From Vitrella brassicaformis CCMP3155 (lineage: Eukaryota > Protista > Chromerida), in NCBI GenBank assembly GCA_001179505.1, contig CDMY01000929.1, forward strand, positions 175,842 through 239,841: a stretch of DNA of 64,000 nucleotides, written 5' to 3'. The position numbers and the translations under genes are program-made. Positions within the stretch are counted from its first letter, which is position 1, and every line of letters begins with the position of its first letter. The notes under the pieces were generated by a model. The model saw only the letters and a list, made by a program, of their open reading frames with translations, had not been told where the DNA came from and made no database searches. Positions 1,406 to 64,000 of this stretch are shown one piece after another.

Positions 1406-1755
1406 CCATACAACATATACACCATAGCTTGAGGGAACAACGGCCCGTCTTGTCTCCCAGAGGCGGACGGGCTCTCGTCTCTGATGCTGGGATTACCTGT
1501 GTGGCTGTCAGTGGGACCACTGGTGGACAGAAACCACTGCCAAAGGGCGGCACGGTCATCAGGAGCACCGAAAGAGGGACAAGCTGGAAGCTCATCTCAC
1601 GACGTGAGCGATGAATGACTAGACAAAAGGATGGCAAGATCCTTCCCCAATGAGTGAGGAGTCTCCAGACGATGTCGCTGTGAGGCGAGAAAGGCAAAAA
1701 CGACGGATCGCAGCTGAGCTCGCAGAGAAGATCTGATCATCAACAGCGACAGATT

Positions 1756-4247
1756 ATGCTGAAGCGTGCCGCATTGCGCGAGGACTCCCTCCGGTGCATC
1801 GCTCTCGTCAGCCCTCCCCCCTTCCATTCAGTGCGGCTCGCCAGACGCAATAAGGTTCTCTTCCACGAGTTCCGCAAGCCGCCGCCCGTCGGCATGAAGT
1901 TCAGGGAGCGCCGCGTCGCGTCTGTGACCGAGAACCTCATGGATCACCCGCTTGAAAACCTGGCTGGCGAAGATCTGGCCGAGTATGCGTATCGGCTGCA
2001 CAGGACGAAAGAAGCGGGAAGCGACGAGTGGGAGGGGCTGGTCGTGCGCATGACGGAGCTAGTGAATACGCCACTGCTGAAGGCCAACCACATTGCGCAG
2101 CTGCTCAAGTTTCTGGCGAGGGAGAAGGAAAAGCTGACGGATGACTCCCTTGCGCCGCTTTATGTTGCTCTTGGGGAGAGGCTGCCTTCCTTCGGCGCAC
2201 AGCCGGCCGCTCGGGCATTCATTGCTTTGTCGGGCCTTGCCGACCTGCCAGAAACAGGTAACAGGAAAACCACAGTGCGACGGCATAGTACATGCAGTGT
2301 GTGTGTTTGTTTGTTTGTTTGTCCCAGGTCATCCCCCATCCGAGAGCCCCTCCGGCAGTGTGTGGCGTCTGGTGGACACGCTGCTCGAGAGGCTTGAGGA
2401 CCATTACGTGCGACTGAAGCTGTCGCCACGGTAGGCAATAAGGCAGTGCAGCAGTGCGTCCAGAGGATGTAATGTGTTTGCTCTCTGTTCCTGATCAGTG
2501 CTGCCGCTCTGTACGCATGTGGCTGCGCCCGACTGGGGCTGCCGAGGAGCCCACATAAACAGCACAGCCAAGCACTGGTACACAGACAGACACGCTACGC
2601 TGTCCGTTTTGCATCTGGGTCGGTTTCTTCCTTCAGACCGTGTTGCGTGACCTGTTGCTGTGCCCCAAGGCAAAGCGGCTTGCGAGGATGGAGCCATCCG
2701 AGCTGCAAGACGTGGTACGGCGGGGCAAGGAAGATGGCGCTCGTTTCTTTCGCGGTGTGGCACTTGTGGGACTTGTGTGGCTGGGTGAATGTCTGGGTCG
2801 CTGGCTGGTTGGTCAGGTGTGGTGTTACGCGTTGGTGGTACCACCAGACCGAGCACTGTTCGATCACATCGTGTGGAAGGTACTCCAGGAGGGAAAAGGC
2901 TCCTGATGTATGCGAAAAATTACACTGTTCAGATCAAAGGCAGTGAGCATCGCCTGCCGCCCCACGTGTGCATCCACTTGGTCATAGGGTGAGTTCAGCC
3001 GAGCCGAGCCGCCTCTTGCAGTCGGTGTATTTATTGTGCTTGCACTGCACGTGTGTCTGTCATTCTCATTGTCAGCCTGCGTCGAGTTGGCCGCCTCAGA
3101 GAGGCCCTCCCTGCCCTGACCACACATCTTTCGACAGGTCGGTAGATAATGCACCAATCAATGGTCAGCAAGATGCCAGTGGCATTACTGCACGGTCGTC
3201 TGGTGTTTGCCGTGTCGTCTCATTCAGTTCAGTCTTTCGAGTGGTGCAGTGCCACGGACCTGGCGCGCGCCCTCCACGCACTCATCCCCACACCAGTAAC
3301 CCCTGATGGCGAACAAACACAATGATCAGCCTTTCACAGACAGTCATTCTCATTCTCTGTGTGCAGGCCGTGTCGGTGTCACTCCTCTGTCGTGTTGCGA
3401 GGGCTTTCGACGGAGAAGGACACTCGGCAGAAGCGTACGCCGCGAAGAGAGAACATGGGAACGGTTTCACGACCATCCGAACGGGCCTCTTTGTTTGTGC
3501 TCAGACTCGGTTGGGATCGCTGGCTCCATCTCCTTCTCAGAGCCGTCAAGAAGGTACGCAGCCGCGTGTTGATGGACTGTGCCGTGCCACTTTGTCTATA
3601 TCTCTGTGGGCTGTACAGGGACTTGCCACCGTCACTCGCGCATCAGCTGAGCAGGTCCTGCCTGAAGACCTCTCCTCGTTTGCTGATAAAGTCGATGTGG
3701 TGAACGAGCTCCTTAATGCCCTCGCATCTGAAACGGTCAGCTTTGACGCGGCAACGGATGAGGATAGCGAGGCGCAGAGGAAGATCGAGCTTGGACAGGT
3801 CAGTCAGTCAGGCAGCACAGGCTCGCGAAAAGGTCCCTCTGTGGTCATGTGCGGTGTGTCATGCAGCTGTTGCTGAAGCACCTGTCGACGTCATGGCGGG
3901 CCAGCAGGGAAGGCGAAAACGAGCCGGAAGAAACCTTGGCCTACAGGAACGGATCCGTGAGAGCGTCGGAGACCCAGGCACCCGCCGCGTCAGCCAGAGA
4001 GGGCGAGGCCATGATCCGAATGCAGCCTTCCGAGGAGGACCCTGATGACGATCCGTGGGCCGGTGCGCTCGGCAGGCTGCTGCAGAGGAAGGCACGTGAG
4101 CAGCGGCTGGCGATACAATCGGTTGATGAGAGTGGGGGTGATGAGTGTGTCGGTGAGGGGGAGGGGTTGGCCAAGTATGAGAGGAAGGGCCGTGTGGAGG
4201 CTTATGAGGTTGTTTTTGGCCCGGAAGAGGCAGACAGGCAGGAATGA
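1756..4247 (+). CDS. Multi-exon hypothetical alpha-helical protein with an Arg-rich leader (possible mitochondrial targeting)
   Basis: ATG at 1756; long first exon to a GTAAC donor near 2257; further GT-AG bounded coding blocks near 2327-2430, 2637-2880, 3368-3460, 3620-3800 and 3876-4247. One gene is assumed, not proven. Confidence 0.55.
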
Positions 4248-4460
4248 TGGATGGGAGGGAGGTGTGCGCGGACATGAGCTCATGACTTCTTGATCTGTCT
4301 GCATTTCATGATCGTGCTCAGGAGAATCGATTTATGCAGTGAATTGCATGGAGGATTCATTGCAATCAGTTAGCCATCACTCACACGCCCGCACACGGAC
4401 ATTATCCCCTGCAGAAGGCCATCGGACATACCATGTGGCAGCTTGTGTGGTCTTGTGGCT

Positions 4461-4550
4461 GACGTATTCAGGTAGCTCTTGACCCCCTTGGTCTCATGGC
4501 CAGACTTTTGGCTATGAGACCAAGGGTGTCAAGGGCTATTTGAATACATC
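4461..4550 (+). other. Near-perfect inverted repeat / hairpin (42-bp stem, 6-nt loop)
   Basis: Arms 4461-4502 and 4509-4550 give 36 Watson-Crick pairs, 4 G-T wobbles and 2 mismatches (counted by hand). Confidence 0.9.
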
Positions 4551-4953
4551 AATACGATGCCATACACACAAGCTAGCTCTTGCCACCAAGTGTATCTATG
4601 TAGCTCATAGCTATTTCTCTACACACTTTGGATGCCACGCCTCCTGTCTCCCTGTCACCCCAGTGCAGCGTACGCTTCACAGCTGGGCACTCGACCGCAC
4701 AGCAGTAAGACGTATGCCACTCGAGTGGAAGGAAGTCGGGAGGATCAAAGGCAGATATGCACCACTCAAGCGAATCCACACATCTCATAGATGGACGTAC
4801 GTAGGCAGCCCGACAGCTAGGTGGGGAAAACACAGATACGTACGTGTCGATCCGTGTGGTGAGCGACCAACCGGCCCCCTCGCTCACTGCACTGTGTGTC
4901 ACCGCATCCTCCCACCAGCCACTCCGCTCGTCCATGTATCTGTCGTCCATCGA

Positions 4954-7328: not shown

Positions 7329-7578
7329 CCTGAGGAAGCAACAGCGACAGATCTGCCTCTTTTCCCTTCAGCTCGCAAGCTAGGGTTCGTCGAGAAACCG
7401 CTCGTCGCAAGGGTGGTGTCTTGTTCAGGATCCAGAAGGCTCAAGATAGACTTCGCTTGTCGATAAGCAGAGACTTTTCGAGGCTTGTTTCGTCAAGCGA
7501 CTGTTGGTCTCTTGTCGAGTTGAGTGCCAGCAGGAGAGCCTTTTCTCTGTCGTCATAGTCTTTGTATCAGCGTATAAG

Positions 7579-8793
7579 ATGCCCGTTGCTGGAACCAGCG
7601 CCATCCTCTCGTCGCATGTCGCCCTGGGGCGGCTACAGGAGGCGTGGAAGCGCATGGACGACTCCCACCTGCGCGTGGACGCCATCTTTGGCCGCCCCTC
7701 CATCCAGCGCGCCAACTACACCGCCATGCTCACCAGCATCGCAGGAATGACCCCCGACAAGCAGGTAGTCCACCCCGATGGCAGATGCCCCCACACAGGA
7801 GATTTCGATTACCTGTCTGTCTGTCTGTGTGTGTCAGATGGAGGCCCTCAGCCAGCTCAAGCAGGAGGCGGCTGACGTCACCCAGACCATGGCGGGCATC
7901 GACGAGGAGTTCCGCCGGTCCAAGGACAACGGAATGCAAATAACCGTAGCTCATCTCAGTGGTACGCGGCCAACACACACCGAGCCACCGGTGCACTCCC
8001 ACAACGACAACTGCAACGTCCCTCTCGATGATCCGCACCTCCATATCGCTGGCTGGTATCTGCGTGTGTCAGGGAAGCGTTCGGTTCTGGATGTGACTCC
8101 GTACGACACTGTTGAAGAGGTCAAGGCCAAGATTCAGGACAGGGAGGGCATCCCGCCGGACCAGCAGCGGCTCATCTTTGCTGGGAAGCAACTGGAGGAC
8201 GGGCGCCTCCTCGCCGACTACAACATCCGACACGGGGCAACCCTCCACCTCGTGCTGCGACTCCGCGGTAGGGACACCTGCCTGTCTGCCTGCCTTCCTG
8301 CCTGCCTCCTACACACGCAGAGGGTCTCTGATGGATTTTGTCTCTTCATTCCATCTGCTCAGGCGGTATGTTTCACATCAGCAGTGGTCGTGAGGGCTGG
8401 GGTTCGGCCGAGATGACCGATGGGGAGCGCCAGAGGCAGGAGCAGCGGGTGGCCATGGCCAAAGAGCGGCTCGCCGACCTGGGCATCGACAACACGGGCA
8501 TCGAGAACGACGAAGAGCTCATCGACGAGGCCATCTTCAATGACCACGAGCTCGAGGCTGCCAAGGGCTGCAAGGAGGACGGCTACGGACAGGCCCTCGT
8601 CGATGCCTGGAGCAACAACGAGGAGGTGAGCCAGACGACACACACACACACACACTCACACACAGGGGGTCGTGAATGTGTGCGTGTGCTTCGTTGTCAT
8701 GGCCAGGTGCTAGAGATGGTTCGTGAGCTGACGGCGGCGTTCGAGACGATGAGCGCCACGAGCGACCGTCTGGTGCAGCGGCTCTCCATCTAA
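7579..8793 (+). CDS. Ubiquitin-domain fusion protein (N-terminal extension + Ub domain + C-terminal extension); 5 exons
   Basis: Spliced [84 protein letters not shown]; TAA at 8791-8793. Confidence 0.85.
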
Positions 8794-9549
8794 ACACACA
8801 ACACAACACATAAATATGGTGAGGGAATGGCATGCCAGCCACATTACACACGACACACACGCTCTCGTATGTATGTGCCTGTGTGCTTTTGTGTTTGTGT
8901 GTGTCTGTCTGCAGTAGAATGCGGTGCGCTGTCGGCACCGTGTACCACTGCTGTTTTTTCTATCTAAGGCGATTTGAGTCATCGACTGCATGGTCTGCGA
9001 TGCTGGTGTGCGTATGCGGGAGCTGCGGTCTGCTGTTGGGGTGCGGCAAATGAGAAGGGCTCGAGGCCTTCAATGCTCTCGAAGTCTCTTCTCGGCTCTG
9101 CGCTTCGAACGGCTTGGCGTGGGTCGATTGCACTCGTCCCGTCCGGCACTGCGTGTGGACATGGTGGCAAGTTTGCTTTCTTTCTGTGCGTTGAGAGAGA
9201 GTGCTGTGATCGATTGTGCACTGCTCTGTGCTCTGTATGGCGTATTGCATTGCATGATGTGTATGTTCAGGCCTCCCCCCTCCCCCTCCCCCTCCCGCCG
9301 CCCCGCTATCGTGCCTTTTGGACTGCTGGTAAGCAAAGTGAACAGTGCGTGCCTGGTACATGCATGTGTTGAGTTGAGAGGAAGTGGGCAAACGTTCATA
9401 AATGCATCCGTCTCATTCAATGCCTACTCAGCCAGAGTGGAAGCCCTGAGGCTTGTTTCATCCCTCCTTCCTTACACTCCCACACGAGACAGACAACCCT
9501 CCCTGTCCACCGGTCAAATGTACCACTAGCCCCCCTCACTCACCACGAA

Positions 9550-10579
9550 CACCCTCCCCCTCTCGATAACGTCACGCTCGAGACCGAATCGCTGCAGCGG
9601 ACGGCGGGCAGCACCAATCGAGTTAGGGGTCAGTGAGTGGATGAGACGCATCGGCAGGAGATGGCTCGGTCGTCCACAAATCGATGATACCATCTCACGT
9701 ACCATCTCTCGCCCACAGATGGGGAGAGGTGGTCTCGTTGGGCTGGAAGCCGTTCAGAATCACAAAACGATCATACCTCGTATCAAAGGCAGCATTCAGA
9801 TCGCCATGATCGTAGCGGTAGTCGACAGCAATGCCCTGATCCTCTGTGATGTCGTCGGTTGTCAGCAAACGGCCATAGCGCGGGTCGCCACGGCCGATAT
9901 GTGCAACGAGCACCAGCTTGCCCACCTCCTCTCCCTGCCACCGGTGGAGCACCCTCTCCATCACGAACGCCGAGAAAGAGCGACAAAGATAGGGGCCCTG
10001 TCGGATGACAGGATCGGTCCGCTTGTAGTCCTCAGCATAGCGATGGCCGCCCGGCAGCTCACCCAACGGCACCACACGAAATGACTCATCATCGACCTGA
10101 TACTGTCCGTCGTCGGTTTGCTGCAGCTCCAAGCTGCCTTTCGTCCATTTCCTTGTGAGCTGACAGCCAATGGTGGCGTATATGGCCATGGCGAGTGGCA
10201 GCTGGTGGAAGACCGTTGCTGTGGGCAGTGAGTCGGCCGACAGACGGAGGGGCCGGCCCGTGCTGGGGGTCAGCCGGTAGATGAAGGCCAGTCGAACGAA
10301 CCGCCCCATCGCCCGCCACTCCTCACCGATGCCCTGCTCCAACAGCCAGACGACCCTCAAGCTGCCCTCCACGTCACCATCAATGTCGAAGGCCAAGACG
10401 TCCTCCAAGCCGAGACGCCTGATGGCCTTGTTGATGTGCTGCTGGACGGCGTTGAGCAGGGTGCTGTTGACGGTCTCTGTAGTGTGGCCCAGCAGCTCCT
10501 GTTGCCGAGTGCGGGTGACGATCTGTGAGCGGAGAGCGGCTCGTTTGGCAGCGTCAGTCGACATGGCCATGGCAGCCAT
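9550..10579 (-). pseudogene. Intronless member of a lineage-expanded hypothetical family (recalled as Vitrella-specific); C-terminus disrupted
   Basis: MAAMAMSTD...LAFDIDGDVEGSLRVVWLLEQGIGEEWRAMGRFVRLAFIYRL... ends at TGA 9695-9697 inside a 12-bp-period duplication. Family-like text continues past the stop (IIDLWTTE) and, after a frameshift, LQRFGLERDVIERG. Confidence 0.6.
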
Positions 10580-10799
10580 CTTGCTGATGGGCAATGACAG
10601 GTCAAAGAGGTCGGCGGGCTGGAAGAGGGCAGGGCTGGGGGGACGGGACGAGGGCGCTGCACCAGTGGGCTGCATCGGTCCGATTCGGTCGTGACTGCTG
10701 TGGAAAGGTCCCAGGGAGGCGTGATGTGCGTGAGAAATCTGCAGGCACACAGCAGTCTGCGAGCTTGGCAGAGGGAAACGAGAGTGAGTAGGCGGCAGC

Positions 10800-12704
10800 A
10801 TGGTGAGGCTATACGACGGCATCGACGACAGCCAGGTGGGCGATACACTGACGTATTGATTGCACGGCTGTCGTAGATGCATTGATTGCATTTGGCTGTG
10901 CCGTTGGCCATGCAGCTCACGACAGAGCAAATCAGGTGGGCGAAAAATGGCCGCATGATGCGTCCGTACAGTTCACGTGGCTGCAATTTGTCTTTTTGGC
11001 TGCCCAGGGCGTGTCTGGCGGAGGAGGAGAGGCGCATCGAAATCCTGCAGCGATACCTCATCAACGAGTGAGCAACACGACCGCACACAGACACGCGGAG
11101 ATGCACTCATCGATGTGAATGCGTGTGTGTGTGTGTGTGTGTGTGTGTGCATGTCAGGGGTGTGTGTCATCCCAGTGAGTTCCCTTTGGTGCCTCCCGTC
11201 CACGAGCAGGAGTGGCAGCGACAACAGCTGGAGCGTCAGCAAGAGCAGCAGCAGATAGAGTCTGCCACAGCAGCGGATTACGCATACCAATACAATGACC
11301 GAGGTGAGTGTTGTGTAATTCACCAATCGAGAGAGCGCATCCCACTCATCCACCCGTCTGTGACCTTTGTGTGTGCACAGGTGAGAGCCCTCAGCGCAGT
11401 GGCGGCTTTGGCAACTTCGGCAACAGCGATGAAGGCAGCCCCACCAGCAGATCTGGATACAGAGGACAGCGATTCGGTAAACCACCACACGCACACAACG
11501 ACACCCCTTCCCCCCCCCACACACGTGAATGATGTTTGTTTCCGTCTGATGGGACACGTGGATGCAGGCCCGTCTCCCGAGCCGTACACCAAAGACACCA
11601 GCAGTGTGGATGGGGCCAAGAAGGAGGTGCCCCTGACGCCGCCCACCCAGTCCACCAGCATGGGCTCGCCACCGGAGAGACCGGTCTGGCCGCACCAGGG
11701 CAGCCATGACTACGTGGTTGGGCCGCCTGTTCGCCAGGTGTCTGAGAAACAGGTAAATTAGTACCTGACCTGACAGTGTGTGTATCCACCAGAATTCACT
11801 TGCACACGTGTCACTGACACGTGCAATTGCGTAGGGCGAAGAGATACTGGCTTCGTTCGCTGGCGGTGTTGAAAGCTGCGATGACGTACGGCAGACAGAC
11901 AGACAGACAGACAGGGATATGCACTTATGTGTGTGCGTGTGTGCGTCTGTGTGCGTCTGTGTGTGTGTGTGTTGATGGGATGCGTCGTCAGTTCTTCAAG
12001 CAGTTCATGGGCGTGACCACCATGTCATCTCAGGTATGAGACTCCACCCACCCACATACACACATGACATGAAGCAATCCAATCCGGGTGAGCACACGTG
12101 TCGTGTGTCTATGAATATGTGTGTTGGTGCCTGTGTGTGTACCGACCGTACAGGCCGACGAGATACTCGCGGAAAAGTTCAACCAATGGCGGTCTCTGTC
12201 GAGAGGTACGGTAGGCACCTGCCTGAATGAGTGGATGGATGGATGGATTCTGTACTTGCACAATCATTCACGTGTTTGTGTGGTCTGTCTGTCCATTGCT
12301 CACTAATCTAATCAGTGCCCCAGCTGCGTGAGAAGTTCTCGGCCATCTACGCCCGCCTGCATACCGTGAGCGACGGACCGACCGATGCTTCCACGTCTCT
12401 TCCACACGTTTCTCTCTTTGTGTGGATGGGCTGGTGGCGTGTGTGTGTGTGTGAACTGAAGAGCCGCCCTGAGAACTGCCGCACCCTCGACACCGAAGCC
12501 GACCAAGCCACAAACACTTGCAGTACGGATGCGATCGATGCGTGTGTGCAGGTGTGCAAACGATGCTCCTGACTGTCTGAGTGTGTGTGTGTGTGTGTGA
12601 CTCTGGTTGCTGCAGGTGGTAGCGCGTACCTCAGCCCATTCATCCGGTTTGTGCGCGACTTCTTCATCGCGCCCTACGTCCACGTGCGGATTTGCACACT
12701 GCAC

Positions 12705-12735
<31 letters not shown>

Positions 12736-15069: not shown

Positions 15070-16178
15070 TCAGTAGATGAAGGGGAAGAACTTGTTGGTC
15101 TCCTGCGCGTACTGCTCATAGTCCTGGAACGTGTCCACCAGCTGCCGCTCCTCGTAGTTGGCTTTGTTCTCCAAGATCCAGAACAGCAGGCCACACAGCA
15201 CCAGCCGCTCGATTGACTTGGTCGCAAGAGCCAAGCCAAAGGACGCTATCAGCAGCCCTGAGTACATTGGGTGCCTCACGTACTTGTAGATGCCTGATAT
15301 GATTGGGGCAAGGGCGAGAGGGATGGCGAAAGCAGACAGACATTGTATGTTGCAGTTTCTGATTCTTCTTGGTGTGTGTGTTGGGTACCCTCTTTCTTGA
15401 GTGTGGCTCCCTGGATGGGTTGCGGCCATGGTGAGATGTCCTCGCCCATCTCAAGCACACCAGTCAAGATGAACAGCAAGCCTGCGCATACACACACACA
15501 CAGATGTAAACACACACCAAAACGTGACATTGTAACCCCATCCATGTGTGTGCATTGTGGCACTCGGCCTATTATGTACCGACCGAGTGATATGAACGAG
15601 GGCCCAAGGCCGTATTCCATGAAGTCGCCGACAACCGGCACTTTGCCAATGATGACAGCCAGGACGCCAAACACCTGGAGAAACGCCCACGCCTCGCCCT
15701 CACCGAATGACGTCTTGTTCCACACATTGGCCTGGACGAATATCAAACCACACCAAGACACACAGGCAGAGCAGGACACACGCTCGCTTGTTGCTCCATC
15801 CATCCATCCATTCGGTGGTCGCCTCACCCTCAGCTTCTCTCGCAGTCCATCGGCCTCGAGCTTGTCGGGCAGCTCCTTCAGCTTCTCAGCATATCGGCCG
15901 AACAAATCAGCCACCTGACGATGCACAGGCATAGACAGCAGAGGGAGCCCAGCCCGTTCACGCGTCTCTCAGTCCATGTCAGGTGACGCGTCAGTGCCTA
16001 TAGCGAACCTCGGCCACTGGGCTCCTCCCCTCCTCGGTCCTTGTCTGCCTCTCCTGGACGGCTCGTGTGAATGAGGTGTCCCTCTCTCTGTCACTGTCGA
16101 AACTCTCCCACGCTGATGGCGTCCTCGAAGCCCTGACAACACAGAACACGCCGATGAACGCCCAAGTGAACCACTCAT
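15070..16178 (-). CDS. Isoprenylcysteine carboxyl methyltransferase / PEMT-like membrane methyltransferase; start uncertain
   Basis: C-terminal signature GIYKYVRHPMYSG...EERQLVDTFQDYEQYAQETNKFFPFIY; upstream hydrophobic exons and GLLFILTGVLEMGEDISPWPQP. Confidence 0.85.
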
Positions 16179-16234
16179 GGGCTGCGTAGATGAGGTGATC
16201 CTGGCGCACCTTAGAGCAGTACTGGACCTCTGAG

Positions 16235-17898
16235 GATCGTGTCTCCTCAGAATGCTTTCCTTGTCTTTCCTTGTCTTCTCCTCTCTCCACCCGTTACACA
16301 GCAATCTACCCTAGCTCACAAGCTCGCAGTGGTTCGTCTTCCCAAGCTGGCAATCCTGACAGATACGCCACCCACTGCCCTCTTTCCAGCTTAGCTCGCA
16401 GTCTTCTCCCCTTCTGAGCTCGCATTGTGCTGGGCATTGCAGATCTTCTTCGAGATGTCGTTTGCCGACCACTGGGTGTCGTTTGAGTCGAGCTGCAAGG
16501 CCAATCTGCAGGTGCTGCTTCTGGCTGTCGTCGGTTTCCTCTGCGGATACTACCCCACCGAAGAACGTACGTGAGAGAGATGCACTCATGGGACGCACAC
16601 CACACCACACGATACGATACGCACTGATACGTACACGCTGATCGATTCATGTCATGATTGTCGTCCTTTGTGTGGGTTGTGCCTGTCGCGGTTTCAGCGT
16701 TCATTGACACACGTGCAGCCAAGAAGCTGAGCCGCATCGCCCTCTATGTGTTTCTGCCGTGCTTGTGCTTCTGCTCCATCGGCTCACGGCTGACTCTCGA
16801 TGACATGGCCACACTGTGGCCACTCATCATGTGGAGCTTCCTGCAGGTCGGCAGGGCAGACAGACAGACACCGCTTGATCCTGCTGTGCTGCCTTCCCTC
16901 ACACAGATCTATGTCTNNNNNNNNNNNNNNNNNNNNNNNNNNNNNNNNNNNNNNNNNNNNNNNNNNNNNNNNNNNNNNNNNNNNNNNNNNNNNNNNNNNN
17001 NNNNNNNNNNNNNNNNNNNNNNNNNNNNNNNNNNNNNNNNNNNNNNNNNNNNNNNNNNNNNNNNNNNNNNNNNNNNNNNNNNNNNNNNNNNNNNNNNNNN
17101 NNNNNNNNNNNNNNNNNNNNNNNNNNNNNNNNNNNNNNNNNNNNNNNNNNNNNNNNNNNNNNNNNNNNNNNNNNNNNNNNNNNNNNNNNNNNNNNNNNNN
17201 NNNNNNNNNNNNNNNNGATCGTGTCTCCTCAGAATGCTTTCCTTGTCTTTCCTTGTCTTCTCCTCTCTCCACCCGTTACACAGCAATCTACCCTAGCTCA
17301 CAAGCTCGCAGTGGTTCGTCTTCCCAAGCTGGCAATCCTGACAGATACGCCACCCACTGCCCTCTTTCCAGCTTAGCTCGCAGTCTTCTCCCCTTCTGAG
17401 CTCGCATTGTGCTGGGCATTGCAGATCTTCTTCGAGATGTCGTTTGCCGACCACTGGGTGTCGTTTGAGTCGAGCTGCAAGGCCAATCTGCAGGTGCTGC
17501 TTCTGGCTGTCGTCGGTTTCCTCTGCGGATACTACCCCACCGAAGAACGTACGTGAGAGAGATGCACTCATGGGACGCACACCACACCACACGATACGAT
17601 ACGCACTGATACGTACACGCTGATCGATTCATGTCATGATTGTCGTCCTTTGTGTGGGTTGTGCCTGTCGCGGTTTCAGCGTTCATTGACACACGTGCAG
17701 CCAAGAAGCTGAGCCGCATCGCCCTCTATGTGTTTCTGCCGTGCTTGTGCTTCTGCTCCATCGGCTCACGGCTGACTCTCGATGACATGGCCACACTGTG
17801 GCCACTCATCATGTGGAGCTTCCTGCAGGTCGGCAGGGCAGACAGACAGACACCGCTTGATCCTGCTGTGCTGCCTTCCCTCACACAGATCTATGTCT
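16235..17898. other. Assembly gap (300 N, 16917-17216) flanked by an apparently identical 682-bp duplication; probable contig-overlap artefact
   Basis: 16235-16916 matches 17217-17898 (offset 982); both copies abut the N-run. Confidence 0.9.
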
Positions 17899-24230: not shown

Positions 24231-24825
24231 TTTTGGAAGCAGCCTTTTCGTTCTGCTCTCTGGGGTTTGTCTTTGACGCCGACTTTCCATATGGGTGCAC
24301 CTACAGCCAAAGTTGGCTGAGGGAGGGGGCAGGAGGTGGGATGTGGGAGGTCGAGGGAGGGCGGATACAAAGAACAACAGGTGAAGGGAGTCACAAAGGG
24401 AGGAGATGCGGAGAAAAACAGCGCGAGCTGTGGCAAATCTGCTCAAAAAGGATCACTGAATATGAATCACGGCGTCTCTGTCTCCCGGCGAGAATTCTCG
24501 ACAAGCATCCGAATTCGCTCGGAAAAGGCACTGAGCGATTGACCACAGGTGGCTCTGTGCCTGTCATGCCGTCCGAAGCCAGCCATCAGTTGAAAATGAA
24601 GACGATTTGGCGAAACACTTTGGCAGGAGTCAACATCGAGGGTGATGTGCCGCTCCATCGTCAGTAGTACAGATCAGCACACCAGACAAAAAGGGCATGC
24701 ACAGATGGATATCAATGACACACTCAGTGGCACGTATATAGAATACACTTGCATTAGGCACAGGAAAACGCTTCTGTGTTGCCTTGAGGTACTCGATCAT
24801 TCACACTCTCTCTCTCTCTCTCTCA

Positions 24826-27629: not shown

Positions 27630-27807
27630 CCCAGCTGATCTGCGAGATCTGGCAGACTGCGAGCTCAAACTTGGTGGTCACTCCAATTTTGACTGCAAGA
27701 GTCAAAGGAGCGAAGAGAATGTAGCATGGCGACGACAGAGGCGTGCAGAGCCCGTTGAAACCAGAAAACAGCACTCCGATTCATAGCTTTCGCTGTTTCG
27801 GTGCACG

Positions 27808-29772
27808 ATGGCTGCCAGTGCCGCCGCCCAGGTGAGAGAAGAGGGAGCTGGAGGCCAAGCAAATCCCTACATCATGACGTGAACTATTTGTGCTGTCTGT
27901 GTGGTTTGTCGTCCGGCCTGGTGCAGATGAGCGCAGTGATTCAGGCGCAGCTGCTGCCTCAGGTACAAGGCTATCGGCTGAAGCAGGCTCAGGTAGCCAG
28001 CTAACCAACACACATACCAACTCGTCCATTCCATGCGGTGCATCCAAAGCTCATCGGCTGCTTGTGTGTGTGGTGTGCAGGTCAACAGCTGCATTGATCA
28101 ACTCCTGCAGATGGACACCGCAGCTTCGATGGCACCACTGGTGCGGCAGGCTGCCAAACAGCACACTGACAACCGGAGCACAAAGGCCTCTGTGTCATGT
28201 TGCTCTCGTCTTGGTGAGTTATTCGTCAGATGGTGGATAAGGTGAGTCGTCAATTTGCTGCTGCGTCCGAGCTGCTGGCCGAGTTGACAGACACCATCAA
28301 CTCGACCATCGCACTGACAAGACATCGCCGCACACAGGTGAGTGGGGGAGTGACCACAGGCAGGCACAAGCACAAGACCCACACTGATGTAGTGCGCACG
28401 TCGCATGTGCTGTGTGTGTGCATGTCTTTCTGTTTGCAATCAGGCGCGACGGTGGCACCTGACTGACATCCCTGCCAACCCCATGAGCATCATCCTGGCA
28501 CTGTCTGACCTCATCACGATCGCCCACCTCAAGTCGGCAGCCCGACCCATCAGAAATGCCCTCCGACCGATCGTCCGCCGCCTTCGGCTGCCGAAGGCCA
28601 TCAAGCGGGTGGGGGTGAGCGGTGTGGTGTAGTTCGACGATCAGCTGAGCCACAGCGATGTGGTGAAGGCCATGTGGGTGGTTGAGGAGGGGGGCGAGGG
28701 CGGCTGGGGGGAGGTGGGCGGCACGCTCAGACTCGCTGAGCATTGCGGCTCTTGTCAGCTGCCGGTCACAGTGGGTGCTTCTGACCTGCAGACACACGCC
28801 ACCAAAGGCGGTAAGCACGACACACAGAAGAGGCAATGGGTGAGCTGCTGGATGGGTGTTTGGGTGCAGGATTTCTTGGCGCTGTTCCGTGTGTTTGCGC
28901 AGTGGATGCTCGTCGGCCGCTATGTGGCCTTCCGCCGCCCCACCGGCCAGCAGGACGGCACACTAGAGCTGTTCCGCCACACCAATGAGATCCGCGTCAT
29001 CCGCAGCGAGCCCACCTTCACCATCGCCATCAACCCGCCCCTCCCCCTCCCCACCGGCCGCCCCGTCCATCCCTTCTCACAGCACCCCTTCACCCACCAC
29101 GCCAAGCCACACGACCCGCCAGTCCGCAGCCGCATTGTGTGGCATGCTGGTGTGGGCTGGGGGACGGTCGGTGCCAACGACGGGCCTCTTTACGCATCAG
29201 CGAGCTCCATGCTGAAGGGGCTGCTGCTGAGTCACCGGCTGCTGGCTGTGGGCGGCTTCACCGACTCGCCAGCAGTGGTGGTGGACCGGTCAGTGGAAGG
29301 AAGGCGCGCAGTGAGAGGGCGAATGGCTATGTGGTGCGTCATTGATGTGTGTGTCAGGCGTGTGCGTGGTGGCCACCTCGACCGCATCATGACCCAATCG
29401 CTGCACAGGCCCCTCGACGAGTGCTCACTCGTACTGGCGTTCGAATGGGCCAATGGGGTGTGTGGGCACTCGCACGTGCTGACGTCATCCAACGACCCAT
29501 TCATCGCATGGATTCTCTTTCGTATCCAGCCGGGCGACCACCGAAACGGTACGCATACACATTGACAACACATCCATGCTGTCGTGTCGTTTGATCATCC
29601 GCTCTGCTGTTGTCTTTGTGCAGTGCGCGTCATCATCAGTACCAGCGAGGCTGCAGCAACAGGTGTTGCCCATGACGCCCCCTTCGCCCAGCGGTTCCCC
29701 CTGACGGCCGCCAGGGTGCGTCCGGCCCTCGACCCCATCGCGGCCATCGTGCTCGACGGCCAGGCGCCTTAG
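27808..29772 (+). pseudogene. Lineage-expanded hypothetical family member with an internal nonsense codon
   Basis: Multi-exon; GVV*FDDQLSHSDVVKAMWVVEEG has TAG at 28630-28632 where the paralog reads AAG (K); ends LDGQAP* at 29772. Confidence 0.75.
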
Positions 29773-32678: not shown

Positions 32679-32879
32679 TGTGAATTAAGATGGATGAATG
32701 GCAAGGCTGTTTTAAGGCCTCAACAGACTCAACACGCCTCACTCGCTGCCGTTCCTCTCCTCTTCCCCTCCTTCCCCTCTCCCTCTCCATCTCGCGAGCT
32801 TGTGATCCGTGGCGAGCCTTTCGTTTGTTCTTGGTTTTCACAAAGATCTATCTCTCCGTCGCCCAGCCCTTCGCCTCCC

Positions 32880-39036: not shown

Positions 39037-39378
39037 CTCAACACGCTACCGCTAGATGGATGGGGATGCACGTGCGGGCTGTGTCCGTCCTATCCTAGGT
39101 ACCTGCAAGGCCGGTGGACACTCAGATGACCGCCGACACACAGGTTGATGCCGCCAACTCAAGAGAAGCACAGCCACAGCTACTGCGATACTCCGAAGTC
39201 GTACTCTCTGCGTCGTTTCGCCTCCCGAAATCACTCTTCGCCAATGCGAGCTTTTGCGAGCTTATAACTGGCTGAGTGGGAGAGAAGGAGAGTTTGGATC
39301 CCTGAAAGATCTGCAGCCTTAACCGACACGTGTCGTCTCTCCCTTTCCTGTCGAACGAGAGCGAGCGTATCTCGCTTG

Positions 39379-43540: not shown

Positions 43541-45034
43541 ACAGACAGACAGACACAGACACCCTACACACACTGACTGACTGACTCACCAACTCAACTG
43601 GGCTCTTCCATGTCAAATCTCGCTATCTTCTCCTTTCCCCGTGGCCGTCTGTATGTATTGTGTGTGGGTTTTGTTCATCGTGGCCTTTCAAGGAAACACA
43701 CACCTGCCTCTCGTGAGTGAGTGATGGACCGACCAGTCAATTCTCTTTCCTCCCCCCATGTCTGTCTATCTATCCACTGCGTCTGTGTGTGAATGCCTCG
43801 GCGGCCGTGCGTGTGGTTCACTCACAGTGAGTGACGTGAGCGGTCAGCTGGTGACAGCTTTCACTTGCTGACCGCTCTCGCTTCCCCCTGGGTGACCCAC
43901 ACTCCCGCCTGGCCTGCAGGTGCGTGCAGTTTTGGTAGGGTTTTTCCGTGCTCGTCCTTGTACTCTTGCGTTGCGCGTGGGGCTGGGTGAGTGAAGGGAT
44001 GGGTGGAGGGAGGGATGCATGTGGAGTTTTGTCCATGTGTGTCGTGGGTGGGTGTGGGTGCGGTCGAGACCAGGCGAGACAGGACACCCACCAGCCAGCC
44101 ACCCTTCCCTCCCCCATGATCACATACATCCATACAGACGTAAGCAACGTAGATGCATTGGTGCGATGCAATTGTGGGGCGGGCGCGGCGTGCGTGCTGT
44201 GTGATGCCGCCCCCCGTGTGTGTGATCGCTCGCTCCGCCCGCCCCACTTTTTGAACAGGTAGGTAGCGCTGCCCGCCCCAGGTGTGCTGCGCCACCCCTC
44301 TACTGACTCTCTGACTCAGGAAAGGTGAAGGATGTCTTCTCTGCGCAGGTTGTGTCGTGTTGTGTTGCCCATTCACTTGCCGGCCAATAGACAGACAGAC
44401 CGATGGACAGGGGCGTGTTCAGGCACGCCAGCGAATGCAAGACAGGTGCTCTGTATGTCTGTGTATGCGATGCGATGCGATGCCTGCGGTTTTAGAGAGA
44501 GATAGCTGCTTGCCTTCCTGTCTGGCTGGTCCGTCGGGTCGGTCGGCGCGGGCTCTGCGGCCCCGACCTCACAAAGTGATCAAGTAGAGATGGCTGGCAG
44601 GCGGGCAGGGACGCAGGCAGGGAGATAGACAGACAGCAGGTGGGCTGTGTTTTGTCGCTGGCTAGCTGCTGTCGTCGAATGAAAGCAGGCAAGACGGTGG
44701 TGGGATTTTGCATCCGGTGCACATACAAAACGGGCATGCATACTTGCGTGCGTGCGTGCGTACTCATTGAATTGAGTGAGACCTCTCTGATATAATACCA
44801 TACCGATCGATCAATGAGTGACAAATGGCTGTCTGCCTGGCTGGCTGGCTGGCACATCAATTTTCGGCACAGGGGAGACCGGTAGGTAGGTAGATGCGTA
44901 CACCGATACATACCATACCATACACAGAGAGGAGAGGAGACGAGAGGAGAGCTGTCATTTAATGTGTGTCCGTGTGTGTGGGTGTGTATGTGTGTGTGTA
45001 TGTGCCCGGGGAAAGCACTGCTGAGAGGAGAGCT

Positions 45035-45067
<33 letters not shown>

Positions 45068-45939
45068 GACACACACATGGCCGTGTTTTGTCATCAGCAT
45101 GATGATCCATCCATCCACCATCTATCTATCTATCTCTGCTTCCTTCCTTCTTTCCTTTTTGTCACTTTGCTGCGTGGCCCTGCAGCGCCCCACCTCACAC
45201 AATGACATTCATTGATGCGTTGCGTACATACTTACGTAATGTTCACAGGTAGGTAGGTAGGCAGGTGTGCCTGCCTCTCAGGCTGGCTGGCTGTCCGTCG
45301 GGAGGCGGGAGGCGGGGGCGGGCTTTTGTTAAAAACAGGCCGGCTCACTGTGTCACTGTGTCTGTCGGGTCATTCATGTTCATTGGTTCATGTCCCCAAT
45401 TGCATACTTACCATGCCATTCCATTCCATGGATACACATACCATACTGTCGACGGCCGGCCGCCATCTGCTCGTTTTGAAGGGCTGACCGGCTGGCTGCT
45501 GGCCATCCTGCTCGCTCCCTCCCACCTCTCCTCTCACCTCACCTCCCTCCCTCCCTCCCTCCCTCCAGATGATTGTTTGTCTGTTCTTGGCGGGAGCCTC
45601 TGTCTGCCTCTCTTTCTCTATCTCTTTCACGCCGACTCTGTGACCACTCACTGACAATCGAATAGTCTGCGTGCGAGAGCGAGGGGCGCGCTATGTTCCG
45701 CCGTCAATGAATGAACACGGGAGGCGGGCGGCGAGGGGGAGAGGGAGAGAGGGATCTGTATTCGCGGCCTGTTTTCCCCATACGGTGCCATGCGTTGTTT
45801 CCCATTGTTTGCCATTGTTTTGTTGAAAGGACTCGCCCGTAAAAGGACTCGGCTTTTCAAGGAAATCTGTATCATTCGTTTTGCATGTCTGTGTGTGTGT
45901 GTGTGTGTGTGTGAATGCAGCAAGGGGGAGGTTTGGGGG

Positions 45940-46239
45940 NNNNNNNNNNNNNNNNNNNNNNNNNNNNNNNNNNNNNNNNNNNNNNNNNNNNNNNNNNNNN
46001 NNNNNNNNNNNNNNNNNNNNNNNNNNNNNNNNNNNNNNNNNNNNNNNNNNNNNNNNNNNNNNNNNNNNNNNNNNNNNNNNNNNNNNNNNNNNNNNNNNNN
46101 NNNNNNNNNNNNNNNNNNNNNNNNNNNNNNNNNNNNNNNNNNNNNNNNNNNNNNNNNNNNNNNNNNNNNNNNNNNNNNNNNNNNNNNNNNNNNNNNNNNN
46201 NNNNNNNNNNNNNNNNNNNNNNNNNNNNNNNNNNNNNNN
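45940..46239. other. Assembly gap (300 N) bordered by G-runs on both sides
   Basis: ggggg before and gggggggg after the Ns. Confidence 0.95.
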
Positions 46240-46423: not shown

Positions 46424-46454
<31 letters not shown>

Positions 46455-48726: not shown

Positions 48727-49500
48727 TCACAGCTTGTTGTAGTTCAAGAGTATGGGGTAGAGGTGTCGGAAGGCCATGTGCAGCTCCTCCTCAGACCTCG
48801 CGCCGCTCAGCGACACCTTCCCCGACACAAACACCAGCGCCGTGCAGCTGCACGCCTTCTCCCCCCCCTCAACCCTCTCGTCCTTGACCTTGAGCACATC
48901 CCTGAACCGGAACACGCAGCCCGAGAAGAGCTCCGGCTCGTAGCTGCACCGCTCCCGGTGGTCGAAGGCCAGGCCCTCCAGCCGGACGGGGAAGCCGACG
49001 TCTGCCGATGCGATGACGTTCTCGACCTTGAAGTTGGCGAAGACCACGTCGGGGAAGCCCACCTTCTGGATGATGCGGGCCATCCTCTTGCCGCCCAGCT
49101 TGGCGTCCTTCTCCGTCTTGCTGCCCGATATCATCATGCGGCCCGTCCGGAACACCAATGCCGTGCACCGCGGCTCCCGTATCCGCATGACCACTGCGTT
49201 GATCTTCTTGGGGTTGAACTCAGAGTTGCGCGTGGACAGTGCGATGGACTTGAGGTCCAGCTCCCTCCCCAGCTGCACAGACGCTATCAGGTTCTGTACC
49301 CTGGGCTTCATCTCAGGCGGCGGCTCGGCGGAGGGGACCAGGGCGCTCTCTGAGGAATCAATGGCGTCAGCTGCGGCTGCCGAGGCGCCGGATGGGACTG
49401 CGAGGGCGAGGGAGCTCTCCGGTGAGGGCTCCTTCTTGGGAGGGATGGGGAGAGGGATGGGAACGGCAGGAGGCCCATCAGGATCCAGCAGGATGCTCAT
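48727..49500 (-). CDS. TBP: TATA-binding protein, apicomplexan type, intronless
   Basis: VQNLIASVQL...EFNPKKINAVVMRIREPRCTALVFRTG...FKVENVIAS...YEPELFSG...LVFVSGKV...IL. The KIN motif replacing KRF matches my recollection of Plasmodium TBP. Confidence 0.95.
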   Translation of the reverse strand: MSILLDPDGPPAVPIPLPIPPKKEPSPESSLALAVPSGASAAAADAIDSSESALVPSAEPPPEMKPRVQNLIASVQLGRELDLKSIALSTRNSEFNPKKINAVVMRIREPRCTALVFRTGRMMISGSKTEKDAKLGGKRMARIIQKVGFPDVVFANFKVENVIASADVGFPVRLEGLAFDHRERCSYEPELFSGCVFRFRDVLKVKDERVEGGEKACSCTALVFVSGKVSLSGARSEEELHMAFRHLYPILLNYNKL

Positions 49501-49762
49501 GACGTCAAATCAGAATCCGCGGTGTGCTAGTCGCCTTTGTTTTAGTGTTTCGAGGCTGTTTCGTCGCCTCATCTGAAGCATTTCACGGAAGAAGAACCAT
49601 TTCACGCAATGTCCTAGGCCCTCGACCGGAAGCGAGGGCAGGGCTGTCTATTCTCTCCCCGTTAGCTTTATCGTAGTGCTGAAACGCAGCAGCAGCTCGA
49701 CGGAGATACGCAGATCTAAGCGCTGCTGAGGATATCGCTTCACACAGCGTCGACATAGCAGC
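49501..49762. promoter_or_regulatory. Putative bidirectional promoter between TBP and RAN
   Basis: 262 bp between divergent ATGs; AGCTCGA at 49694 and AGATCT at 49712. Confidence 0.6.
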
Positions 49763-51200
<1,438 letters not shown>

Positions 51201-54925: not shown

Positions 54926-55023
54926 CTTCGCATGCGAGACTGGCCTTCCCCCACTTGCCCCACGCCACAGCTCGCGAGACTCGAGCTCTTCGAATGGAAG
55001 GCGCTTATCCCCTGACCCGCAAC
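54926..55023. promoter_or_regulatory. Putative bidirectional promoter between CFAP36 and the CFAP97-like gene
   Basis: 98 bp between divergent ATGs; AGCTCGCGAGA at 54969-54979. Confidence 0.6.
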
Positions 55024-60200: not shown

Positions 60201-60400
60201 TTGTGTGTTCGGCTGAGATCTACTTTTCTGAGAGGCTCAACAGGGTCCGCTGACGCCTCTGTTGCACCGCAGAGATGACACCAACAACCTACAACAACCA
60301 CGCCAAACAGGCGTGCAGTGGCAAAAGATCTGCAAGATCTGCAGGGGAGTGCAAGTTTCTCTTCCTGCAGCCGTACCAGGCCAACAAAACGCATCGTCAT
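57225..60400 (-). CDS. Repeat protein (one or possibly two genes) with ~8 copies of DP(L/M)xxL(K/R)xxNPxAYxLVxxLL and a helical C-terminal region
   Basis: Repeats recovered by in-frame splicing at ~60250, 60030, 59770, 59500, 59300, 59010, 58650 (partial) and 58570; hydrophobic N-terminal stretch; 3' end uncertain. Confidence 0.65.
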
Positions 60401-60513
60401 CTGGCCAGTCCTCGCCTAACGGTCAGCCCGGCCAGCCGTTGAACACCTTTTGAACCGATTGCTAAACTCCGACGAGGCCATGAAATAGCACCCACCCACG
60501 CACAAGTGGTGCA

Positions 60514-61926
60514 ATGCAGGGATGCCTCAGCGCCATCTCGACAGACGTGAGTGCCCCTTCATCTCGAGAAGGCTCGTCGTCCTCCCTGCCTCCCCTCGCG
60601 TCGCCCGTTCCTCCCCTCTCACTTGCGCGATTCCATGAGGACAACAAGCTGCCGCCGCCGTGGCCGTCAGTAGACCCACCGGCTGAATATCTGTCGCAGC
60701 TGTCGAGGGCTCTCAAAAGCCTGAGAGAGGGACAGCGAAAGGAGATCACCAAGCGCAGGCAGTCATCCCAGCTCGTGCCGACACTCCCGCCGTGCCATCC
60801 AGACCCCTCTCGGGGCACCGTCCCGACCCTTCCACCACCGTCTGCCATTCTGCCCCTGCCGCCCCATCGGAGCACCAACTGCGCCAAGCCCACAAAGCGG
60901 CGAGAAGACAACGGCGGCAGCAGAGAGGCGATGGGGCGTCATGCAAAGGTGCCACGTCTTGATGCGCCCCAGAAGCAGCGTGCTGGCCCTTCCACTGGTC
61001 GTCCCGAGTCCCCATCGGTTTTCTACGACCAGTCGGTTCGTGCGTGGATCGTGCCTGCAGCGGAGAAGGGCGGTGGCGAGCGCGCGTTCAGTGTGGATGT
61101 GTACGGGTCGGACGCGCGGCGACTGGCGTGTATGGAGTTGCGAGAACAGCAGGACAAGAAGCGCGCGGAAGAGAGTGCTGTGGTGAGCCGTGACGATGAC
61201 GCTGCGCCGTCTGGCGAGGCGCAGGATGGGGTTGAAGGGGAGGGGAAGGAGAGTGCAGTGCCGACGATGCACACCAGCCGGAAGCATCGCTTGCCGCCTC
61301 AATTCATTAGTGGTATGGCACAAGATGACCAATTGGCTGGATGGACCTCCCACGGCTGTCTGTCTGTCTGCTTTGCCGTGTGACGTGACGCTACAGGTGT
61401 GCCTGGCGTGCTGTGGCATTCGAGACAAAGATACTGGTAGGCGTGACGCACATGGCCACATACGACACGTATGCCCTGGTGGTGACCTCGCTTGATGCGT
61501 GCTCTTCAGGTTCGCGCAGTGGCGTGAGGGCGGGAAACAGAAGGCCAAATTCTTCCCCACGTGGCGTTATGGCTTCGAAGGGGCCAAACAAGGTAAGCAG
61601 CAGCGAGACAACCGCTTCTCTGCTCACTGATGTGTGTGTGACATCCATCAGAGGCCGTCAAGTTTCGGCGAGCGATCGACCGGGCGAAGCTGCAGAAGCG
61701 CCTCAAGATTGCTGAGGGTGAGGAAGGCACGTCCACAATGGACCAGTCGCTGACGGAGATCGCCAACTCGATCGTGGCGTCCACCCCACCAGCATCGCCT
61801 GTGCACGATGGAAAGAGGGATGGGGGCGACAGTCGTGAGGAGACGGAGGCGGCACTGATGCTGGTGGAGCTGGTGAGGGACATGAGGAGGGAGAAGGCAG
61901 TATCGGGGGAGGGCAACAGTGGCTGA
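60514..61926 (+). CDS. ApiAP2 transcription factor with two AP2 domains; 4 exons
   Basis: VFYDQSVRAWIV...ERAFSVDVYGSDARRLA; spliced SGVPGVLWHSRQRYWFAQWREGGKQKAKFFPTWRYGFEGAKQEAVKFRR. Confidence 0.88.
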
Positions 61927-62588
61927 GGGATGAGAGTCAGCGTTTGGGTTGGTTGGTTGGGTGTACATATATCCATCATGATATGATGTATATATACGTG
62001 TGCACATGTCCACACGTGAGTGCATGTGATATGTGCGTACAGTACAGTACTGTCGTGTGTTACACATGAGGAGGAAATGTCTTGGTATCTCTGATATCTA
62101 TGTCTCTGTCTTGCGCCCTGGTTGCTGTCTGTCTGTCTGTCTGTCTGCACAAGAGGGAGGGATGTACACACCTGTGTCAGTCGATCAATGTATACACGTG
62201 TACAGTCCCATTTTCTGTGGTTTCTTTGCTGTCGCCCTATTTGACCGACCGGTGTGCACGTACACTCATTGCTCTCGGCGTGCTCATCTATTTCCTACAC
62301 ACAGAGGTGAGAGGAGGAATATTTTGATCGACAGATATTATACTACCGGTGCAAGGAATTTTAGGCTTCCCTTTTGTGAGCTGGTTTCATTCATTCATCA
62401 TCACGTGACAGCCCTTTTTGCCTCTGGCTGTGCGTCAGTGGACGGACGGACGGACAGGATGGGTGCGTGCGTGTGGCGAGAGATGCAGTACTTGCTGAGA
62501 GCCCAACGCAGCCAATGGACACAAGACATACATGAATCGGTCCAAATGCACACTGAGTCTGACAAAGGCGATGCATCACACAAGCACA

Positions 62589-63442
62589 TCACTCTGTCCT
62601 CTCATCTCTCCTCAGCCCCTTGGCCATGAAGATGACCCCATGGCCATCATTTGCCTCTTCATGAAACCCCCTTTTCTCGTACCACCGCCGTGCACTCGTG
62701 TTGCTCTCTTCCACAGCAAGATAGATGCTCTCATGGCCTTGCGAGACCGCATGCGAACACACCATGGACAGAAGAAGCGAACCAAGACCTGAAACATACA
62801 TACGCACCATGCGCCCGAATCACTCACTCAGCCGTGCTGCTTGCACTCACCCACCGTGGTTTCGATGAGCGGCATCCACGGCCAGATCAGCCACGTAAGG
62901 CAGCTTCTCGTCCGCTCTCAGCTGACCACAGCCGTCCCGCCCTTTCAAGTCGCCTAAATCAAAGCCGACGTTCGCTGTCGGCGGCCTTTTCCTGCTGTCA
63001 TAAGCCACGTGGCCGACGATGCTGTTGGTGTCTTGGTCAGTGGCCACCAAGCGGACAATGTCTGACTGCTGGCTCTGTGAGGTGTCGACCTCGGCCTTGT
63101 CGGCCTCTTGGATGATCTCCAGCACTCTGTCAGCCGGCGGTGACGATGTGTTGGTGAGCGGGAGGGCCTCTTGCAGGAAGAAGGCAACTGATGATGGCAC
63201 ACACACACACACAGACCGATGACCATGTGCACATGGATCTCATTCCTCTCACCAGCGTAGCTGTCCTGCGGCCTCATTCTGCGGATGCGATAGCTCTTGC
63301 TGCCAATGCGATGAGTCGCTGACAAGGATGCGGGACGGGGTCGGTGAAGCGCAAAAGAAAGCACGAGAGGAGGCAGGCAGAAAAGAGCCAGAACAGCCCT
63401 ATCAACTGGATGCGGGATGGCCGTGCTGCTGAGCGGACTCAT
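62589..63442 (-). CDS. GNAT-family acetyltransferase with a hydrophobic + Ser/Arg-rich leader (possible plastid targeting); 3 exons
   Basis: SIVGHVAY, YVADLAVDAAHRNHG|LGSLLL (acetyl-CoA motif A), YLAVEESNTSARRWYEKRGF (motif B). Confidence 0.9.
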
Positions 63443-64000
63443 GCCGGATGGCAGCTACTCATTGAATTGCCCTCCTCTGGTCAGGACACCACCAACGCCG
63501 TGCTGACCGTCTCGGTGATTTGTCCATGTGCTTCAGCTGCTCTCCATGTGTCAGGCAGCTCATAGATCCGGCCCTCGTGCTCCCCAAGCCCTATGCGAGC
63601 TTGCAACACACAGCTGCTGAATGGAGAAGCAGTTCAAAATATAATGCTGTTCACGACACACGGCTCTATTCCTAGCGCAGCTCCGGGAGCAGCCGCGAGC
63701 TTGTTCTTGCGAGGCGAAGATTTCCGCCTACGATGAGCCATCTCTTTGATTCACTGGGCTGACGGACACAGCGGAGGCAGCTGAAGGGCTGCACGGTCGT
63801 TCAGGCCGGCGGGCAAAGGAGAGAGGTCGCCACGCCGGTGAGCACAACTGACTGGAGGAGAAAGAGAAAGGAGTGTAAGAATAGGTGGGAGAGAGTCGGG
63901 GAGAATGGTGAAGAGAGGATCTGCCGGGCGGTCAGTCCCGGATAAAGGATTAAGTCAATGCAACGTAAGGTCTGTGGATTTTGTGGAGAGTCCACGTAGG

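Follow-up and report, generated by a model that had tools for sequence, protein, structure and literature searches.

AGCTCGC(A/G), a probable start-site-proximal promoter element of compact, TATA-less and often bidirectional promoters in the chromerid alga Vitrella brassicaformis

The CGCG element of vertebrates, TCTCGCGAGA, directs divergent transcription at promoters that lack a TATA box; it is active in both orientations, with an effect of copy number (PMC6192621). The authors did not decide whether this element, the BANP motif, belongs to the core promoter or serves as a binding site for a factor (PMC6192621; PMC2920758). In Toxoplasma gondii the promoter word gCATGCa is found in 44% of promoters, with a peak ~82 nt upstream of the start site (PMC7854901). 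The genome paper on the chromerids, which are the closest free-living relatives of the apicomplexan parasites including the malaria parasites, describes an excess of head-to-head genes and no promoter word (PMC4501334). In the literature searched we found nothing on how chromerid algae define promoters, no pairing of the word described here with Chromera, Vitrella or ApiAP2, and the heptamer string AGCTCGC only in primer lists. Here we analyze this heptamer in the last 64 kb of the nuclear contig CDMY01000929.1 of Vitrella brassicaformis CCMP3155 (GCA_001179505.1), referred to as the window (window position = record position - 175,841). In its extended form, (A)AGCTCGC(A/G), it is likely to be a genuine, lineage-specific promoter element close to the start sites of compact, TATA-less, often bidirectional Vitrella promoters. 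AGCTCGC(A/G) is probably an undescribed promoter signal.

The coding sequence (CDS) calls of NCBI served as an independent annotation. They cover window positions 17808-59500, and all their start and stop codons were verified. Five divergent spacers are confirmed by these calls (27630-27807, 32679-32879, 39037-39378, 49501-49762 and 54926-54993). A sixth was corrected by the spliced transcript L015 to 7329-7578, with the ATG of the plus-strand gene at 7579 and not at 7778, and three spacers rest on open reading frames (ORFs) or homology only (1406-1755, 10676-10859 and 15933-16454). These nine checkable spacers total 2,357 bp; a tenth, counted in an earlier note on this DNA, was not identifiable. 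Self-trained codon-usage gene finding was too weak for defining genes in the window. The replicate set consisted of four annotated loci (L006-L009) of ~22 kb each on other Vitrella contigs, picked blind to the motif and reached via a Vitrella-only multigene family that was detected with one window ORF. In total, ~150 kb of the genome were sampled. Upstream DNA was defined as the DNA within 300 nt 5' of start codons and was compared with all remaining DNA. Dinucleotide shuffles of the whole window, Markov-1 simulations of upstream DNA and an unbiased scan of 6-, 7- and 8-mers were used as controls.

Counted on both strands, AGCTCGC occurs 25 times in the window (22 unique sites) vs 10.3 ± 2.5 times in dinucleotide shuffles. 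Eight of the nine spacers contain it, with 11 exact copies at an expectation of 0.38 (Poisson 4e-13). Among the annotated divergent spacers the word is present in 4/5, at a density of 4.8 per kb vs 0.21 per kb in genes. For the annotated part of the window we counted 6 copies in 1.9 kb of upstream DNA vs 8 in 39.5 kb elsewhere; Markov-1 simulation of this upstream DNA yielded 0.5 copies, and none of 300 simulations reached 6. The replicate loci gave the same picture, with 7 copies in 6.3 kb upstream vs 12 in 73 kb elsewhere (p = 4e-4), and the enrichment persisted when the anchoring family genes and their promoters were left out (p = 0.008). The observed counts were never matched by Markov-1 simulations of upstream DNA, neither for the window nor for the replicate loci. 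The unbiased comparison of upstream DNA with the rest returned AGCTCG as the top 6-mer, AGCTCGC as the top 7-mer, and AAGCTCGC and AGCTCGCA as the top 8-mers. Upstream enrichment after control of composition, as expected of a promoter element in general, was thus found in the window and in all four replicate loci taken together. The motif TATAWA is absent from all nine spacers. The earlier note had given a list of positions, all of which are correct. It had also proposed an excess of AGCTCGC over chance, a lack of TATA boxes and a lineage-specific element of TATA-less divergent promoters, and on these points our controls, the spacer enrichment and the replication support it. The individual box sites of the window, a one-mismatch copy and a duplicated segment that affects the counts are as follows.

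1717..1724, plus strand: AGCTCGCA box; the ORF starts 32 nt further on, at 1756; spacer defined from ORFs only
7370..7377, plus strand: AGCTCGCA box; the heptamer ends 15 nt before the transcript start of the plus-strand gene at 7391
10758..10765, minus strand: AGCTCGCA box; the ATG of a multigene-family member, inferred from homology, follows after 83 nt, at 10675
16321..16424, plus strand: three AGCTCGCA boxes (16321, 16393, 16417) preceding the ATG at 16455 of a Mem_trans gene; region repeated at 17217-17898
24422..24429, minus strand: AGCTCGCG box between two tandem genes; the annotated ATG, at 23967, is 456 nt away
27658..27665, minus strand: AGCTCGCA box; the annotated ATG, at 27629, follows after 29 nt
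32789..32801, no strand assigned: near-palindromic box ATCTCGCGAGCTT, with the exact heptamer on the minus strand at 32794-32800
39245..39262, minus strand: two tandem AGCTCGCA boxes (39246, 39256) in the spacer of the HMG-box gene and the gene for a 798-aa protein
54969..54976, plus strand: AGCTCGCG box with CTCGCGAG core, near-palindrome AGCTCGCGAGA, in a 68-bp spacer between the ATGs at 54925 (minus) and 54994 (plus)
63594..63701, minus strand: two boxes, 63595 (followed by A) and 63695 (followed by G), upstream of the minus-strand ORF 62954-63442; ORF only
49694..49700, plus strand: one-mismatch copy AGCTCGA in the TBP/Arf spacer; no box at the 5' end of the TBP mRNA at 49563
16235-16916 = 17217-17898, no strand assigned: exact 682-bp duplication flanking the 300-N gap 16917-17216; assembly artefact

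The duplication around the gap at 16917-17216 is explained by overlapping contig ends that were joined by Ns. The matches at 17303, 17375, 17399, 17423 and 17887 are copies of those at 16321, 16393, 16417, 16441 and 16905. Since the gap flanks are duplicated, these five matches are not independent, and the unique totals are 22 for AGCTCGC and 22 for AGATCT, a second word that is discussed below. The contig-end overlap has introduced an artificial break into the membrane-transporter gene that begins at 16455.

The functional word is longer than the heptamer and reads (A)AGCTCGC(A/G). We aligned 21 upstream sites and compared them with 20 internal sites. A purine follows the heptamer in 20/21 upstream vs 7/20 internal sites (p = 5e-5), and an A precedes it in 11/21 vs 1/20 (p = 0.001). 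In the window, each of the 14 upstream sites conforms to AGCTCGCR. This form is enriched upstream ~30-fold in the window and ~12.6-fold in the replicate loci (p = 8e-5 for the replicates), and AGCTCGCY shows no upstream enrichment in either. The AGCTCGCA form, which has no second CG, accounts for 14 of the 21 upstream sites. Internal sites are mainly AGCTCGCC or AGCTCGCT and lie in coding or conserved intronic sequence of paralogues. The box is found on both strands, and its sites include near-palindromes, tandem copies and one inverted pair (in L009). We rejected one-mismatch variants as equally functional forms: most are unenriched, with a mere hint at position 2 (ATCTCGCR, AACTCGCR). We likewise discarded the idea that the box belongs to a repeat or transposon, since the flanks of the sites are unrelated to each other; with flanks that are not conserved, the box sites do not form a repeat family. 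An RNA gene was discarded on the grounds that no Rfam family and no tRNA matched in the window.

Four public sequencing runs were aligned on positions 27400-33100. Three of them are DNA. X7 alone is spliced and behaves as RNA, as judged by spliced joints with CT..AC ends; the spacer at 27.6 kb is not covered by it. Together with a transcript from the JGI/MMETSP sets, this run supplied two RNA ends next to a box.

32813, plus strand: end of a 3,252-nt X7 contig, where the depth steps from ~6 to 119; carboxylesterase-like gene with its ATG at 32880
7391, plus strand: 5' end of the JGI/MMETSP transcript L015 with exons 7391-7764, 7835-7962, 8072-8268, 8362-8628, 8705-8818 and from 8914 onwards; ATG at 7579

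The X7 contig ends 13 nt beyond the box at 32794-32800, within a degenerate reverse copy, GGCGAGCC. L015, from which five introns are spliced, begins 15 nt after the plus-strand box at 7370-7376. Both mapped RNAs start past the box, and boxes occur on both strands; the earlier suggestion of an element of the 5' untranslated region is therefore contradicted where it could be tested. The transcripts L013 and L014 of the TBP gene start at 49563 and 49562 with no box nearby. The element is accordingly common but not universal, as its absence from the TBP promoter demonstrates. The TBP gene itself (48727-49500, minus strand) is canonical and intronless, has a 63-nt leader and forms a head-to-head pair with the gene of an Arf-family GTPase. 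A CGA stands at the beginning of each of the three mapped 5' ends, 7391, 32813 and 49563 (CGAGAAA, CGAGCCT and CGAAACA), which may be an initiator-like preference (n = 3). L015 (7391-10074) contains an ORF of 284 aa with a ubiquitin domain and a separate ORF of 179 aa (8990-9529), and runs into its convergent neighbour. Two readings fit this layout: overlapping transcripts that were merged, or one transcript whose long 3' region holds a second ORF.

Among the described systems the vertebrate CGCG element is the closest functional analogue of the Vitrella box, in the sense of a resemblance of function that implies neither descent nor membership. Both are short CpG-containing words near the starts of TATA-less promoters, both occur in either orientation and in one or several copies, and they share the core CTCGCG, some Vitrella sites being AGCTCGCGAGA or ATCTCGCGAGCT (32789-32801 and 54969). 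The Vitrella consensus, (A)AGCTCGCA, is however non-palindromic, with the flank AG/AT-CTCGC instead of TCT, and BANP, the reader of the CGCG element, is an animal BEN-domain protein. CpG methylation abolishes the activity of the CGCG element. Upstream sites in Vitrella do not have the palindromic 10-mer with TCT/AGA flanks around CGCG, and the replicate loci show no enrichment of CTCGCGAG, the palindromic core (0 upstream vs 2 elsewhere). Toxoplasma is a myzozoan relative in which bidirectional gene pairs are numerous, and its gCATGCa has in common with the box that one short word is found in many promoters. The two differ in sequence and in position, at about -82 for gCATGCa vs 13-15 nt from the mapped RNA ends of two genes for the box. 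The TATA box, the initiator (Inr), the TFIIB recognition element (BRE), the downstream promoter element (DPE) and the DNA replication-related element (DRE) and Ohler motifs of Drosophila resemble the box in their closeness to start sites and in a plausible role in fixing starts without TATA. TATA, Inr (YYANWYY), BRE and DPE show no similarity to the box in sequence. The box occurs in both orientations, and a fixed position of it is seen in two genes only.

Based on these results we propose the following mode of action. A sequence-specific DNA-binding protein would read the box as double-stranded DNA and would set where RNA polymerase II starts. The occurrence in either orientation, the near-palindrome CTCGCGAG and the inverted or tandem pairs suggest that a box could act on a single gene of a divergent pair or on both.

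The earlier note had combined the box with the palindrome AGATCT into an ordered two-part code, in which both words act together and follow each other as box, AGATCT and ATG. In the whole window AGATCT occurs 24 times (22 unique) vs 13.3 ± 3.6 times in dinucleotide shuffles. The sites in the spacers are the following.

1729..1734, no strand assigned: AGATCT, with further sites at 7349, 16441, 27645, 32844, 39307 and 49712; 8-66 nt from a start codon

The claimed enrichment of AGATCT held in the window. The word is present in 7/9 spacers (Poisson 9e-7 before correction for the choice of one word from ~2,000 possible hexamers), 5-44 nt from a box, and its sites are nearer to start codons than random positions (p ~0.004). 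In favor of a partnership, GATC-containing words are also 3-fold commoner at distances of up to 80 nt from promoter boxes than from internal ones, and GATCTG is enriched 2.5-fold upstream in the replicate loci (p = 0.018, chosen post hoc). For AGATCT itself, however, the four replicate loci show no enrichment: 2 sites in 6.3 kb of upstream DNA vs 1.6 expected, a presence in 1/8 divergent spacers and no site within 100 nt of a start codon. The word is not among the top words of the unbiased scan either. The order within the proposed code is uninformative, because any divergent spacer has an ATG on both sides and the sequence box, AGATCT, ATG is automatically true. Where a start is mapped, the AGATCT at 7349 and the box at 7370 lie on opposite sides of the start region of the plus-strand gene. 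The AGATCT at 32844 is transcribed, since it lies 31 nt past the RNA end at 32813 and thus inside the 5' leader. No AGATCT is found near the boxes at 10759, 24423, 54969 and 63595/63695 or near any of the seven boxes of the replicate loci. AGATCT is not a required partner of the box and is the weak part of the finding. If it has a role at all, it would be that of a weaker, GATC-containing word in 5' leaders and promoter DNA; a weak second word next to the box is possible, and we consider a two-part ordered code to be quite unlikely. The suggested GATA-type reader has no basis, as AGATCT reads GATC on both strands and does not contain the WGATAR core. For the ApiAP2 factor that the earlier note named as another candidate reader, the analysis brought no support.

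Several observations weigh against a start-site-proximal promoter element. No orientation rule emerged, and in tandem gene contexts 3 sites point toward the gene and 2 away from it. The boxes at 54969, 27659 and 1717 are only 18-32 nt from annotated or inferred ATGs, which implies either very short leaders or wrong start codons. Only two distances from box to start (13 and 15 nt) are available, both of them from assembled contigs, which can miss terminal bases and are no proof of a capped 5' end, and X7 is taken for RNA from its spliced joints only. The conclusions are drawn from a sample of ~150 kb of the genome. Finally, the presence of AGCTCGC in 8/10 divergent spacers, as given in the earlier note, is borne out by 8/9 checkable spacers and nevertheless overstates the wider rate, which is 3/8 in the unselected loci L006-L009. 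At this prevalence the box might be no general core element but a factor-binding site that occurs often. Such a site could belong to one ordinary gene-specific transcription factor that marks a regulon, with its closeness to starts being incidental. The frequency of the box (~5/17 of the promoter-bearing intervals), the TBP promoter without it, the distance to the ATG, which varies from 18 to ~270 nt, and the precedent of gCATGCa as a proximal site at about -82 and not a core element (PMC7854901) are all consistent with this explanation. The neighbouring genes, on the other hand, are functionally unrelated (HMG-box, carboxylesterase, CFAP97-like, membrane transporter, ubiquitin-domain protein, ATG14 and multigene families), which argues against a narrow regulon, and the two distances from box to RNA end nearly coincide. 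We therefore regard a regulon mark as rather unlikely.

The box could also be the initiator itself, in which case transcription would begin in AGCTCGC(A/G), at its 3' border or within the reverse complement, G|CGAGCT. The assembled transcripts would then lack roughly twelve bases at the 5' end, or begin at another, degenerate copy. Terminal bases are often lost in random-primed RNA-seq assemblies, all three mapped ends begin with CGA, one of them, 32813, within such a degenerate copy, and several boxes are as close to the ATG as described above. Yet the contig ends lie 13-15 nt outside the exact box, and two assemblies from different data sets stop at 13 and 15 nt past it and are not scattered. 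The X7 depth in the bin of the box is wholly accounted for by the contig starting at 32813, and the TBP mRNA starts with CGA without a nearby box. An initiator is in our view unlikely. Chance or base composition would make both words ordinary for GC-rich spacers from which they were picked by eye; they were indeed chosen after the window had been seen, and the window-wide excess is only ~2-fold. Against this, Markov-1 simulations never reach the counts of AGCTCGC, which is the top word of the scan and was confirmed as a pre-specified hypothesis in the replicate loci. Chance is refuted for AGCTCGC and may still account for AGATCT alone; as an explanation of the whole finding it is hardly credible. 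Returning to the start-site-proximal promoter element as the favored reading, a stronger version would make AGCTCGCR the TATA-box substitute of chromerid algae, a core element read by a lineage-specific general factor with a CGAR start ~15 nt downstream. We consider this version very unlikely. If it were true, a myzozoan lineage would have re-specified how RNA polymerase II finds its starts. Dinoflagellates are reported to use a TBP-like factor with altered specificity.

With a short, strict, start-proximal word, the factor could be sought by DNA-affinity purification or DNA affinity purification sequencing (DAP-seq). The box would further aid the correction of annotated 5' ends and start codons, as in the shift from 7778 to 7579 in this window, and the design of expression cassettes. 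It would also permit a test of whether the promoter logic of apicomplexans (gCATGCa, ApiAP2) was inherited or is a later invention.

Two other words were noted in upstream DNA. CAAACAAA is enriched upstream in the window and in the replicate loci, and the telomere-like, telo-box-like AAACCCT occurs 4 times in the upstream DNA of L006-L009 and 0 times elsewhere in these loci. A second gap in the window (45940-46239) lies inside a poly-G run in a motif-free stretch and has no flank duplication. Nearby, independent DNA assemblies also break at ~46439 and ~46968.

Exact look-ups of ORFs 770-1405 and 7778-8413 gave no match, and the sole match to ORF 60514-61380 was a Logan contig that is unspliced. 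Among the homologues of the ubiquitin-domain ORF, polyubiquitins dominated, which made this search uninformative. Two degenerate-pattern scans of metagenome contigs for transcripts of four motif-bearing genes found none. Searching with ORF 9698-10930 recovered a large Vitrella family and not the window's own gene. The copy at 9635-10675 (minus strand) is a member of this second Vitrella-only family, with at least 70 matches, and is missing from the NCBI protein set. Its homology extends past the ORF stop at 9695; it may be a pseudogene or hold an unrecognised intron.

The Vitrella-only multigene family, which has at least 45 members and lacks any Pfam domain, is represented in the window at 27808-29772 (plus strand) and 30525-32678 (minus strand), and in L006-L009 at ~10001-12100. 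Copies of the 27808-29772 family share 75-83% DNA identity over exons and introns. The minus-strand copy was split by NCBI into 30525-31403 and 31602-32678; paralogues align across both parts, and an RNA joint connects 31438 to 31499.

At 60326-60343 we observed a tandem AGATCTGCA AGATCTGCA, away from any AGCTCGC box. The start of an unspliced Logan contig from run SRR505714, at 60332, falls exactly on the junction of its two copies. The ORFs 44495-45121 (minus strand) and 35638-36273 (plus strand) have exact protein matches in the JGI/MMETSP transcript sets and no NCBI gene; they are probably unannotated expressed genes.

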